Source: Bugula neritina (lineage: Eukaryota; Animalia; Bryozoa). Taken from it: 64,000 bases of DNA. Positions 40,645-46,212 of this stretch are shown here, piece by piece. Both the position numbers and the translations under genes were made by a program. Below the pieces are notes generated by a model that was not told the DNA's origin, searched no databases, and saw only the letters and a list, made by a program, of their open reading frames with translations. Positions within the stretch are counted from its first letter, which is position 1. The number at the start of each line of letters is the position of its first letter. The stretch spans positions 11,998,741 to 12,062,740 of the forward strand of contig OZ037768.1 of the NCBI GenBank assembly GCA_964035545.1, read 5' to 3'.

Positions 40645-43600
40645 TTAGCAAAGGACGGAACTGGCATACTCTACATTATCTGAGAGTTGGGAATCTTCTA
40701 GAAAACGACTCCTACAAACAAAACTTGAAACAGTTTAAGGTGGTTACAATATATAAATTTTGTCAAGACAAGTTGATACGAAACACTCACCATGTGACTG
40801 GAAATTTGTCTGCTACATCACGAGCACAGAGTTTTCCTTGTGCTTTTTGACTGTCAACCCAGTCTACGTAACCAACACTCAGTTCCTGGAGAAAGAACAT
40901 GACTATATATGCATGCATCATGTTCAACTGTACCTCTACAGTTGGCAAATATTGAGCACATAAATTTTAAAAAGAGAGTTAAGGCCTGGCCTCACGCTCG
41001 TGAGAATCACACGAAACCGTCTATTTGACACGAAAAACACGAACGTATGGTAAAATTTGACAGAATTCAAACGAAATCCTCTTCGTTGGGTGCACCTGAC
41101 GAAGACGATGGACGAAAAAAAGCAATTTACAATAAGCACCATTTGATTGGTCAATAAAATTTTAGCAAGAGTAATTATTTCATTTCTACCACGTTTCTCT
41201 GTTTGGTAATTTTCTGCTGTTTGTATCTCGTGCAAGACTCATTCACGGACTATTTATTACGTGTTTTGTCCGACGAGTGTGTGGCTGGTCATAACGAGAG
41301 GATAACTCACGAAAATCGTCACACGATTTTTGGGTGATTCTCACAAGCGTGAGGCCAGGGCCTTTAGTAGAACAGCACCAGGAAATTTAGCTGTGTTGAT
41401 ATTGCTTTACATATTGCAGCAGTTGAGGCTACAAGTTTACTTCAGACGTTTACAACCAATGAGTAAATAGAAGATTTACACTGTGCACCTTGTGTGTGGC
41501 ATATATAACTACAAAAGCTAGCAGCAAAAATTGTAATACTCTCATCACTTCTAAAATAATTTATAATAAAAAATGTACCCTAAACAATGCTTCTTGAAGC
41601 CTGTGTAGGCATATCTATTTAAACTAAAAGATACACTATAAACGTGCAGCAGCAATCTTAGTACACAGCAGGGATGTCAACAATAGCTAGCACAATAATG
41701 AATTACCAACCTGCCATTTCTTAACACTGTCCTCGTCTAAGTTCAACCAAGACTTTATTTGTCTGAGCCGCGTGTCTATCTGCAACAAACTTACTGATAA
41801 ATTTGGACTTTAACTTATCATAACTTTACATAAAACTTGTCATTTTCCATAAAACCAAATTGCCAAATGCTAAAACACATTCATAAATATATTAATTTAA
41901 GCATGCAAGAAAATGTTTTACATCAATAATACTTCACAATGAGAAGTTTTCTCCCTGTTAAAAATTGTAAATTACTTTGTAATGATTTACTAAACATCAA
42001 AATTGATATATCTAATTTAGTCAAAATAACTTACCTTTCGTTTTGTTTCTGTAACAGAAAGTCCGTTTTTACTAAAAAGAGCATTCCTAACTCTTTCCCT
42101 GACTGCCCTACATATTATATACCAAGCGGTCTTTTTCTTCAATAGACCAATCACATTGCGCTCTCTATCCAGATAGTAGAAAACTTCCCCTTCGAAACCA
42201 TGCTGGTGTCTAATCTAAAACACATCACGACACTGTAGAAATATCAACTATAAAATGCAGAGATACAACTACAGTAGGGGCTCCGAGTTTTGCTCTTGCT
42301 GCAATATTTGAAGTCATAATTGACTATAGAAATACCACAGAATAACCACTCTTTCAAGCCTGATAAATAAAATGTTGCAATAAATAATACACATAGTTGG
42401 CTTCAATTACATAAAGAATGACTGTTAAATTGGAGAAATACTGTCATCGTGATGGTTTGATTAAATTCAGAAGCTTAATATGTTTAGCCAATAATATTAA
42501 AGCATCTTGTACAACAACTGGTGTAGCAAATTGGCGGAGCAAAATTCTTATATAGGTTTTGTACTTTTAAAAAAGCATAAAACTATGTATACATAAATGT
42601 GATTAATCACAAATGCACAAAAATTAGAATTGTGTGATATAGGTCAACACAACAAGTAAAATGAGCATCGTCTATACATCCTTATTTATAACTCTACTAT
42701 ATACTAAAGAAGCTACAAAAGCTCTAATTCCATTAAAGCGGTGGCAGCACCTACTACTAATCACACTAACCTGTAACATATGAGCTTCTGCATCTACAGC
42801 ACTAATCTCTTTGTATTCTACAGGATCAAAGCCGAAGTATGCTGCCAACTTTATAGCTAGGTCTGGTGGGAAAATACACAACTCGTCTTTAACATTGAGG
42901 TTTGTAGATGTCCATGTGATGAACTTCAGAGCACTCCTGCGAACAGATATGAAGAATACGCTTCTATAACCAACAATATGCTTTAGCACTAAACCTATCA
43001 AAGCTCTGTTCAGTTACTTTAAAGAAAATAACAATATTTGTAGCCTTTGAAGTGCCAACTGTTGAATTATCTAAAAGTAAAGATAAAAGAAATAAAAAAT
43101 TGCTACAAATTGCAATAAACAGATAAAGCTAAGATAGAAATAGATTTCACACTTGCAGCAGTTGATGTGGGATAGCAGGCCGAATGTTCGGACAATAATG
43201 ACCAATACTTTGATGGCATTCTAACTAAGAGCAGGTCTGCATTAAATACAAAGTGAGATAGGCTGTGATATGTTATGGTTTAATACATGCTAAGCATCAC
43301 AAATTTTAGTGCATTTAAACATCTCCAAAAATATTTTAGCTAGTTGAGGTTTATCTCGGTAGTAAATGGTCAACACTAATCCCACGTGTTTGTAAATATA
43401 ACATATTGGAAAGCAAAAGACTATGGCTAATGAAATAAAAGCATTCAAAACAGTTAGAAGTGGCTTCTATCACTTTTAGGTCTTTAGAGCTTCAGATTTT
43501 TCATAGAAATAGAAAAAAATAAATGCTAAATACCTATAATAACTATCAGGACAGGTAAAACTAGTAGCAGTAATTACGCTGAGAATTATTAAGCCTTAAA

Positions 43601-45549
43601 AATGCAATTCTAATAAAAATGGACTAAACTAGAGCTACTAATTATAATACCAACTTTTCTCCAAGGTAGGACAAATCCTCAACATGCTGATGGTGAGGAT
43701 TGAGGATTTCAAACACCATAGTGAGTCGAGTTTCAGCAAGAAAGTCTAAAAATCTATGAAAAACAACAGAATCAGCTGTGTACTAAAATTGAAACACAAT
43801 ACATGAAATGTTGGCTAAAGAGTATATAGCAATCTTATTAACAATAATGATGAGCAACCGTTTGTATGCTCTATGTAAACATAACTTCAAAAATAACACA
43901 AACCACTTTAATATAAAACCTAGATAATTCACATACTTGATAACTTTTGAGCGCTCCATGGTCTCCAGAAAAGCTAGAATAGTCTCGGATATTTCACGGG
44001 CATACTGATAACGAGACTCATCATATTTATTGATATCAGACTTTTTCCTTATAATCAAGTGAACATTCTAAAACACATTGATTGCATTTAATCCATAAAA
44101 ACATATCGCTATAAATAAATAAGGCAAGAAAAAATCACTAATAATGTTTATATAGAAACAAAGAATTACTTTAGAGCCAGCGATAAGGTAATGAACTCCA
44201 CAGTGTTTTATACAACTTAGATGTGCTGCTTCACCATTAGCCTTTTTTAGAGAAATCACAGATGAAGCTTCACTGATGTCCTAAAATCAAATAAGAGACT
44301 GACCGAGTAAAAATTTACAAGAAAAAGAATACTAGTGTGGTCAATAAAAAACACTGAATGATACTAGAATATTGCCACTAGTATTGCTACAAGTACTGAT
44401 ATTACTAATTCTACTAAAAAGAACTTCAAAATATTTTCAACTTTTAGATAATAGATTGTTCTGTAATAATCTATAATTAGGTAGAACTACTAAAAAGTTA
44501 TTGAAAATTAGAAGTAAGGCAACTCCATATTTTAATAGAAGAATAGTGAAAAAATAACTACATATAGGTAGCGTCTCAGCTTCATGAATGTTTTTGTTAC
44601 TCACTAATTCCAGCATAATTAAACACTCCAGCTGTCTTTTTGTTAGGATAATCAAGTAATGGTTGTTGTAAACTTGTCATTTACATTAAATTAGGTAAAC
44701 TATATAGCAATACTTTACTGTCAAATTTATCATTAGATCACAAGATATTTTTTGATAGTTTTTCAGTTTTCAAGATGCCAAATTTTTATAATCATTTTAA
44801 TCTTACTTTAACAAAATATCGTTTCCAAATTAACTTATCTCCTCCTTCTGATCGATCATCATCATCTCCCATACCGCCTGTGAACTTTTTTAAAGCATAA
44901 GTTACACAGTTCCAAGGCTCATCCTGAATCCTTATAAAGGCATTACCACGAGCCACCTAAAATGTTAACTGATTCACTTGATGGCCATGTCACCTTGATT
45001 TTTAAGCAGAATAATAACTTTTTCATTTATCTTTCTCAGCAGGTTCAAAGAATGTTCAGAGCAAATTTTTAAGTATTAAATAATAGAGCAAAAATGTTTC
45101 TGAATTATTAGCAGTACAGAAAAATTTTAATTGGAATTATTACTTCTACCGGTAACATACTTTTTGTCTAAGTTCCACATCTTTGTCATATACAAGGTCA
45201 TCTGGACCTCTGCTATGTACTTTTACATCAGCCAGTTGAACTTTAACACCATCTGGAAATATCCCCAAAGGAATTTCCTTTATAAAGACTTTAAGCTGAG
45301 AGTGTTGCTCTGCCCAATTGACAAATCTAAATCACAATACGGACTATGAATACAAAACAATGCAGCAGTAGATTAATTGTCAAAATATACATTGCCATAG
45401 AGCTATTGCATCCTTTACATGAAATCTTAATAAGATGTGTGAAAAACGACATACTCGGTTCCTAGTTCGGAATTGTGTTCTAACGGCTGCTGTAGTTTTT
45501 CAATGTAGACATCAGGGTCATCACTAATAGCTTTCAGAGTTTCTTCCAT
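40645..45549 (-). CDS. Putative ATP-dependent RNA ligase, T4 Rnl1/fungal Trl1 ligase-domain-like (442 aa, 11 coding exons)
   Basis: Exons 45549-45455, 45326-45161, 44956-44807, 44280-44170, 44067-43937, 43753-43655, 42936-42771, 42214-42035, 41779-41711, 40885-40791, 40711-40645 join in phase with GT-AG ends (1329 nt including TAA). Motifs in order: VARG, LKKFTG, motif I KKANG, Ia GSKN, III TMVFE..HQHV, IV FEGEV, V LLKKKT. Confidence 0.82.
40982..41363. mobile_element. PIF/Harbinger-type MITE in an intron of the RNA ligase-like gene
   Basis: ~29-bp imperfect terminal inverted repeats AGGCCTGGCCTCACGCTCGTGAGAATCAC ... GTGATTCTCACAAGCGTGAGGCCAGGGCCT, flanked by a TTA target-site duplication (40979-40981 and 41364-41366). 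CpG-rich interior with no credible ORF. Confidence 0.85.
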
Positions 45550-46212
45550 TATAGATGCCCTACTAATATCCAAGTGTCATGCAACATATAAGGTGAATTC
45601 TGTTATAAAAAAGTTTGATTGAAAATAGAAACTTAATCTTTTTTTAACTTTGTATGAAGTTTGGCAGAATGCATTTTTCATCACACCGCACACCCAAATT
45701 TACTAGAAAATTAGGATAAAACATATACGATCAAGCAAGAAAAAAACTTGATTATTCAGCTGTATTTGTTAATATTTCATCAATTTAATGCAAGAAACTA
45801 TATACATTGGTGGCTAAACTGTGAAAAATAGCTAGAAACTAGAGATATATAGTGTGCACTAAAGGATTTAAAATGACCCTTACGATAACTATCTATAATT
45901 CACTATTTCACTTCTAGAATTAATATAATAATTATATCAAAGTGACATTACTTATTAGTCATTATATTTTAAAGTACTAATAGACATAACCCTACACTCT
46001 GCAGGTTACAAAGTCAAATATTTAAAGTACATGTTTATTATTTTTATCTATATTATAATTTAATAAATTAATTTTTAATTACAATTTCAATTTGATATTT
46101 TTATTTTACTAATTTAGATTATTGCAGTAAATCTGGGAATGTTTATTTTAGTATTTGTATTTCACTAATATGTATTTGTTTACGTATTTTATTTTTGTAA
46201 CCTTTTGCAATT

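Follow-up and report, generated by a model that had tools for sequence, protein, structure and literature searches.

The animal enzyme type considered here is reportedly known from one 2010 study by Englert et al., and to our knowledge reviews still treat the ligation of tRNA and XBP1 in metazoans as the task of RtcB only. The lancelet enzyme in question, BfRNL, a stand-alone protein, was shown to ligate 3'-OH,2'-PO4/5'-PO4 ends and to complement yeast trl1 (PMC10946426). A review lists it as gi|260818956 and notes that the Pfam RNA_lig_T4 model does not detect its family (PMC3400036 supplement). The lancelet carries RLIG1 and BfRNL as separate genes, and which ligase seals which RNA break has been stated to be unknown for this animal (PMC10680797). 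The gene described below lies on the minus strand (40645-45549) of a 64,000-nucleotide stretch of the genome of the bryozoan Bugula neritina (contig OZ037768.1), the whole of which is referred to as the window. We consider it quite likely that its product is a sealing-only 3'-OH,2'-PO4/5'-PO4 ligase of the Trl1 fold, orthologous to BfRNL, which would operate in a split heal-and-seal pathway beside RtcB. It is not a new kind of animal ligase but very probably an orthologue of the lancelet Rnl that a preliminary description of the window had named.

The 11 exons of the gene join in frame and without internal stop into 1329 nucleotides, encoding 442 amino acids and a stop, and all ten introns (79-825 nucleotides) have GT-AG boundaries, which reproduces the gene model proposed earlier. 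The coding exons and the elements of the protein that they encode are as follows:

45455..45549, minus strand: coding exon 1, residues 1-32; start ATG at 45549, with the 5' untranslated region upstream to at least 45710
45161..45326, minus strand: exon 2, residues 32-87; N-terminal subdomain with a conserved GPDD
44807..44956, minus strand: exon 3, residues 88-137; ARG (R90), KF and an acidic GDDDD loop
44170..44280, minus strand: exon 4, residues 138-174; motif I KxNG (K150, the predicted site of adenylylation, and N152) and motif Ia SK (K174)
43937..44067, minus strand: exon 5, residues 175-218; helices, with the last part of motif Ia and the invariant H177
43655..43753, minus strand: exon 6, residues 218-251; motif III E233, and H241
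42771..42936, minus strand: exon 7, residues 251-306; F256, whose position places it in motif IIIa
42035..42214, minus strand: exon 8, residues 307-366; motif IV EG (E314), motif V KxK (K332, K334) and the start of the C-terminal domain (C-domain) with R342-x-x-R345
41711..41779, minus strand: exon 9, residues 367-389; helical C-domain
40791..40885, minus strand: exon 10, residues 390-421; helical C-domain
40645..40711, minus strand: exon 11, residues 421-442 and stop; 3' untranslated region on to at least 40520

The junctions, for which a check against transcripts had been proposed, are supported by assembled contigs from four sequencing runs of four studies, in which the introns are skipped, nine of them exactly at the predicted CT..AC ends; intron 8 is also skipped with identical net length, and exon 9 then begins with four letters that differ. 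The four runs are probable RNA runs by a guess at their type, their contigs are about 95-96% alike to the window, indicating a sibling lineage, and they speak to presence, not to level or strand. Of the five exonic differences examined between contigs and window, three are synonymous, and another puts K, the family consensus, in place of R347. The ATG at 45549 is the likely start, because an in-frame stop lies upstream of it and exon 1 runs unspliced in the contigs to at least 45710. The gene is single-copy in the 216 Mb genome.

Searches with the window protein were made exon by exon, the spliced protein being compared locally, and exon 8 alone recovered 168 clusters at 50% identity. The closest protein is that of another bryozoan, Watersipora subatra (58% identity over 440 amino acids), whose gene matches all ten introns in position and phase. 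The lancelet proteins show 47% identity over 412-415 amino acids, and five of their eight introns, with a sixth in a 484-residue lancelet form, lie at the same position and phase. Only one Branchiostoma cluster, with the members XP_002604648.1 and BRAFLDRAFT_126791, is present among the matches; conversely, the ligase locus is the sole match in the Bugula genome when XP_002604648 is the query. The published catalytic mutant of BfRNL is reportedly K184A, and Lys184 is the motif I lysine of this lancelet protein. The window family is, moreover, also missed by RNA_lig_T4 (PF09511), its best member scoring 27.4 bits against a cut-off of 28.3. The bryozoan protein thus resembles BfRNL in being stand-alone, in 47% identity over more than 410 residues, in the single locus found in each direction, in five to six of eight lancelet introns, and in a genome that also encodes RtcB and, as a gene of its own, a PNK/CPDase; it differs in an N-terminus shorter by about 30 residues and in being known from sequence alone. 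XP_002604648 is very probably BfRNL, the enzyme characterised in 2010, and the window gene very probably its bryozoan orthologue.

With a full-length family member as query, the matches listed come from molluscs (gastropods, bivalves and a chiton), nemerteans, an annelid, a flatworm, rotifers, a tardigrade, copepods, barnacles, springtails, hemichordates, lancelets, a choanoflagellate and a chytrid (experimentally tractable genera include Macrostomum, Brachionus, Hypsibius and Aplysia), with no vertebrate, nematode or winged insect among these matches. A quick maximum-likelihood tree without bootstrap, which roughly follows the species tree, unites the two bryozoan proteins (SH-aLRT, the Shimodaira-Hasegawa-like approximate likelihood ratio test, 99) and places them inside a group of spiralians, hemichordates and lancelets (SH-aLRT 92). 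As judged from gene structure, the ligase gene shows vertical descent from a bilaterian ancestor, because its intron positions are shared with the lancelet. Nearly all listed homologues go under the name uncharacterised or DUF7920 (PF25536). On the DUF7920 model, which has 315 positions, animal members score only about 45-65 bits and are probably outliers to its seed; no paper mentioning this label was found, and it carries no function. Some homologues bear database names such as "actin-binding protein IPP-like" and "SWIM-type", which we discounted as automatic annotation with no support. Five family members (P0108, P0139, P0259, P0262 and P0265) bear C-terminal additions in forms of about 700 residues, the added domain being either Methyltransf_16, a lysine methyltransferase, or a weakly matching B3/4 (RNA-binding, PheRS type).

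The predicted structure of the Watersipora orthologue has a pLDDT (predicted local distance difference test) of 93, and in Foldseek its best-ranking matches all come from the ligase domain of fungal Trl1 (E 4e-11 to 9e-10). Residues 20-448 of this model align with residues 23-406 of the Trl1 ligase domain (Trl1-LIG; PDB 6N0T) at Z 27.9 and a root-mean-square deviation of 3.1 over 349 residues, with the C-domain included. The corresponding values are Z 19.2 (274 residues, deviation 4.7) for T4 Rnl1, Z 16.7 for archaeal Rnl3 and Z 7-8 for DNA ligases, which have no matching C-domain; a helical C-domain is the defining trait of the Rnl6 clade (PMC11404444). Neither sequence nor profile queries against the PDB detected Trl1, which emerged only from the fold search, while Pfam searches with single exons gave nothing useful, with no match to PF09511 or PF17720, and an Atlas search with exon 3 gave noise below threshold. 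Of the earlier assignment to an Rnl1/Trl1-type ligase, for which a fold comparison with both had been proposed, the nucleotidyltransferase ligase fold and the Trl1 part thus hold up, T4 Rnl1 being the poorer match. The structural model indicates that the window protein is of the Trl1/Rnl6 type and not of the T4 Rnl1 type and would, therefore, probably need a 2'-phosphate.

Along with the fold, including the helical C-domain, the bryozoan protein has in common with fungal Trl1-LIG (Rnl6; PDB 6N0T, 6N67, 8RBJ, 9QW7) motifs I-V and apparent counterparts of N150, H227, R334 and R337. The identity between them is, however, about 15%, and the bryozoan form has a GDDDD loop before motif I, an RxxR preceded by C, L or V instead of Y, and a genome that also encodes RtcB, which most fungi lack. 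Neither a kinase nor a cyclic phosphodiesterase (CPD) is fused to it, unlike in the trifunctional Trl1 (LIG-KIN-CPD), whereas the sealing-only RNL of Mucorales is likewise stand-alone. With T4 Rnl1 (PF09511) it has in common the nucleotidyltransferase core and the RG, KF, KxNG and SK motifs, but the T4 enzyme is without the RxxR motif of the C-domain and seals 2'-OH ends (PMC10946435). Human RLIG1/C12orf29 (PF17720) is also an animal ATP-dependent RNA ligase of 5'-P/3'-OH ends, but no match to PF17720 was found in the exons or in any scanned family member; a search of the Bugula genome with PF17720 gave no match either, though its control was silent too, so that an absence of RLIG1 is not implied.

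All motifs of the preliminary description are found in the spliced protein in the order given there: ARG (89-91), KKF (110-112), KKANG (149-153), GSKN (172-175), TMVFE (229-233), H241, EGEV (314-317) and KKK (332-334). Across 121 homologues K150, N152, K174, E233, E314, K332, K334 and R342 are invariant, which bears out the expected conservation of the motif I lysine; H241 and R345 are conserved in 99%, R90 in 99-100%, and the nucleotidyltransferase set as a whole (K150/N152, K174, E233, F256 by position, E314, K332/K334) in 96-100%. The window protein agrees with 61 of the 62 near-invariant columns of this alignment. K150, encoded at window positions 44244-44242, is the predicted site of adenylylation. 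In Chaetomium Trl1 the equivalent K148 is adenylylated, contacts to the 5' end are made by R99, K169, K323 and K325, and recognition of the 2'-phosphate falls to H227, R334 and R337 together with N150, mutation of which slows RNA adenylylation 60- to 420-fold (PMC11404444, PMC12440814). R90 matches R99 by order, and R342 and R345 lie 8 and 11 residues past the last lysine of motif V, versus 9 and 12 in Chaetomium Trl1; by order and spacing, H241, R342 and R345 are the candidate counterparts of the H227, R334 and R337 triad. An invariant WY stands three residues before the family position of the Tyr of the fungal YRxxR. No P-loop kinase or 2H phosphodiesterase module is present in the 442 residues, the contigs continuing into the 3' untranslated region after the helical C-domain, in agreement with the earlier observation of a helical C-terminal region only.

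A search of the genome for the partners that had been suggested recovered a kinase/2H phosphodiesterase, a CLP1-type kinase and Tpt1. The first is a six-exon gene for 375 amino acids at a distance of 8 Mb on the contig of the ligase (G000:C4:3858552-3860977; L012:565-2990), whose exons match AAA_33 (E 1.5e-8) and, weakly though in the right order, CNPase (E 0.001, below the cut-off) and its homologue G-RICH. The translated sequence has a P-loop kinase that looks intact and two HxT motifs, and this arrangement is that of BfPNK/CPDase (PMC5434554), making it a candidate orthologue of that protein. Genome searches with PF05881 and PF08302 gave no match, and the gene emerged via AAA_33. Tpt1 is represented by a Pfam domain in one intronless frame of 212 codons (G000:C2:7319508-7320026; L006), and a multi-exon RtcB gene accompanies the CLP1-type kinase gene in the genome. 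There is thus a candidate gene for each step of heal-and-seal ligation, next to the direct RtcB route. The top hits of a tRNA search were all intron-less, with no intron-containing tRNA among them. Small contigs of the assembly (G000:C317, C306, C214 and others) carry a PNKP-like gene without introns, a CLP1-like hit and a densely packed group of tRNAs, which suggests that foreign or organellar DNA is present.

By homology with the described ligases, K150 would attack ATP to form ligase-AMP, and the AMP would then be transferred to an RNA 5'-phosphate. An RNA 3'-OH bearing a 2'-phosphate, which H241, R342 and R345 may grip, would attack this activated end, leaving a 3'-5' bond and a 2'-phosphate that Tpt1 could clear from the junction. 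The ends would be healed in trans by the separate kinase/2H cyclic phosphodiesterase, possibly with CLP1 as RNA kinase. Such a route would act in parallel with RtcB where a break leaves a 2',3'-cyclic phosphate and a 5'-OH, the candidates being tRNA exons, IRE1-cut mRNA and stress-cleaved RNA. The earlier proposal of a sealing-only enzyme of an animal heal-and-seal pathway agrees with the fold, the invariant lysine, the stand-alone form and the separate healing genes; nothing was found in support of a specific circularisation pathway, which had been offered along with it.

As to the surroundings of the gene, a large multi-exon ADAMTS gene (window about 12470-39400, plus strand) lies tail to tail with it, an arrangement also seen in Watersipora. 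An extra upstream coding exon (AG near 45564) was rejected, as the contigs pass through this position unspliced. One contig of run X4 carries, at the 5' end of exon 1 (window 45570), 29 loose letters with no match in the window, which may be an alternative leader, a trans-spliced leader or an artefact. Intron 9 harbours the following element, of which there is one copy in the window and many diverged copies in the sequencing runs; it is a passenger and no part of the enzyme:

40981..41364, strand not assigned: repeated element resembling a miniature inverted-repeat transposable element, with terminal inverted repeats of 32-37 nucleotides

Several observations weigh against the reading of the gene as a BfRNL-type ligase of a split pathway. 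The equation of gi|260818956 with XP_002604648.1 is an assumption, no paper naming the accession having been found. The folded protein was the Watersipora orthologue, 58% identical to the window protein, in whose place it stood, and the triad was assigned by order and spacing rather than by superposing individual residues. In place of the Tyr of fungal YRxxR, the window protein has C341 and the family C, L or V. The joint presence of the genes carries little weight, since species that lack heal-and-seal splicing also retain Tpt1 and genes like CNPase (PMC10946435), and the kinase of BfPNK/CPDase prefers a DNA substrate (PMC5434554). The assumed nature of the accession link, the C341 replacement and the failure of the family profile to retrieve any Trl1 by sequence would fit an active Trl1-fold ligase of a family apart from BfRNL, or one relaxed to 3'-OH,2'-OH/5'-PO4 ends like T4 Rnl1 and RLIG1. 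However, we regard this as unlikely, given the one Branchiostoma cluster among the matches, the stand-alone form missed by RNA_lig_T4 just as reported for BfRNL (PMC3400036), and a C-domain that aligns with that of Trl1 and has its His/Arg/Arg conserved in 99-100%.

The same chemistry might alternatively act on DNA or on breaks outside tRNA, in which case the partner would belong to DNA repair and the RNA pathway would be an in-vitro property only: BfPNK/CPDase phosphorylates DNA better than RNA (PMC5434554), and the RtcB present could carry all tRNA and XBP1 splicing. Yet DNA offers no 2'-phosphate to the conserved triad, and DNA ligases are distant in fold and without a matching C-domain, so that this appears a quite improbable explanation. 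A contaminant, a recent horizontal transfer or a pseudogene has almost no probability left. The assembly does include small contigs of apparently foreign origin, such as C317 with its intronless kinase gene, and the family has members in chytrids, choanoflagellates and a virus-like contig, but the gene lies on a large contig beside the same ADAMTS neighbour as in Watersipora, and its product agrees with 61 of 62 near-invariant columns. These explanations are refuted by the introns in common with the lancelet, the synteny and the spliced contigs of four runs, which also give backing to the earlier argument from introns against contamination. The reading as a BfRNL orthologue accordingly stands as the preferred one.

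In a wider perspective, the split pathway of Rnl6-type ligase, kinase/2H phosphodiesterase and Tpt1 might tentatively be traced to the bilaterian ancestor, and many invertebrates of water and soil might have retained it alongside RtcB for a dedicated job that RtcB does not do, e.g. the repair of RNA cleaved under stress or by pathogens; the lancelet system would then be no oddity. A contig from a marine metagenome, dense in genes and without introns, encodes (L019:7210-10320) a protein of 1036 amino acids, P0127 (a related one, P0132, is in L021), residues 595-984 of which belong to the ligase family (hhalign probability 99.9), and whose N-terminal part has a GxGKST loop and HxT-like motifs. 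The contig, with a TFIIS zinc ribbon and an NYN nuclease as neighbours, gives the impression of being giant-virus-like. In Atlas features the N-terminal part resembles kinase and 2H phosphodiesterase clusters (0.87-0.89), which is a lead only; its single-sequence fold has a pLDDT of 33, and a search for its relatives found none. P0127 is possibly a kinase-CPD-ligase fusion with a domain order unlike that of Trl1. If an ancestral split pathway did exist, this virus-like fusion would constitute a Rosetta-stone link, and the vertebrate CNPase and TRPT1 would be orphaned remnants of the pathway.

No paper was found that links the DUF7920 family, the Rnl6 fold and the partner set, though the original 2010 study of BfRNL may already list invertebrate homologues. 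The comparisons presented here tie a large set of uncharacterised or DUF7920 invertebrate proteins to a BfRNL-type enzyme, and the Rnl6 clade, described as fungal, now structurally takes in this invertebrate family, for which predicted 2'-phosphate residues can be named; a candidate set of healing and sealing partners is identified in one genome. The division of RNA breaks between two ligase systems thereby becomes testable in animals with both, and the finding is relevant to how fungal-specific drugs directed at Trl1 would be with regard to invertebrates.

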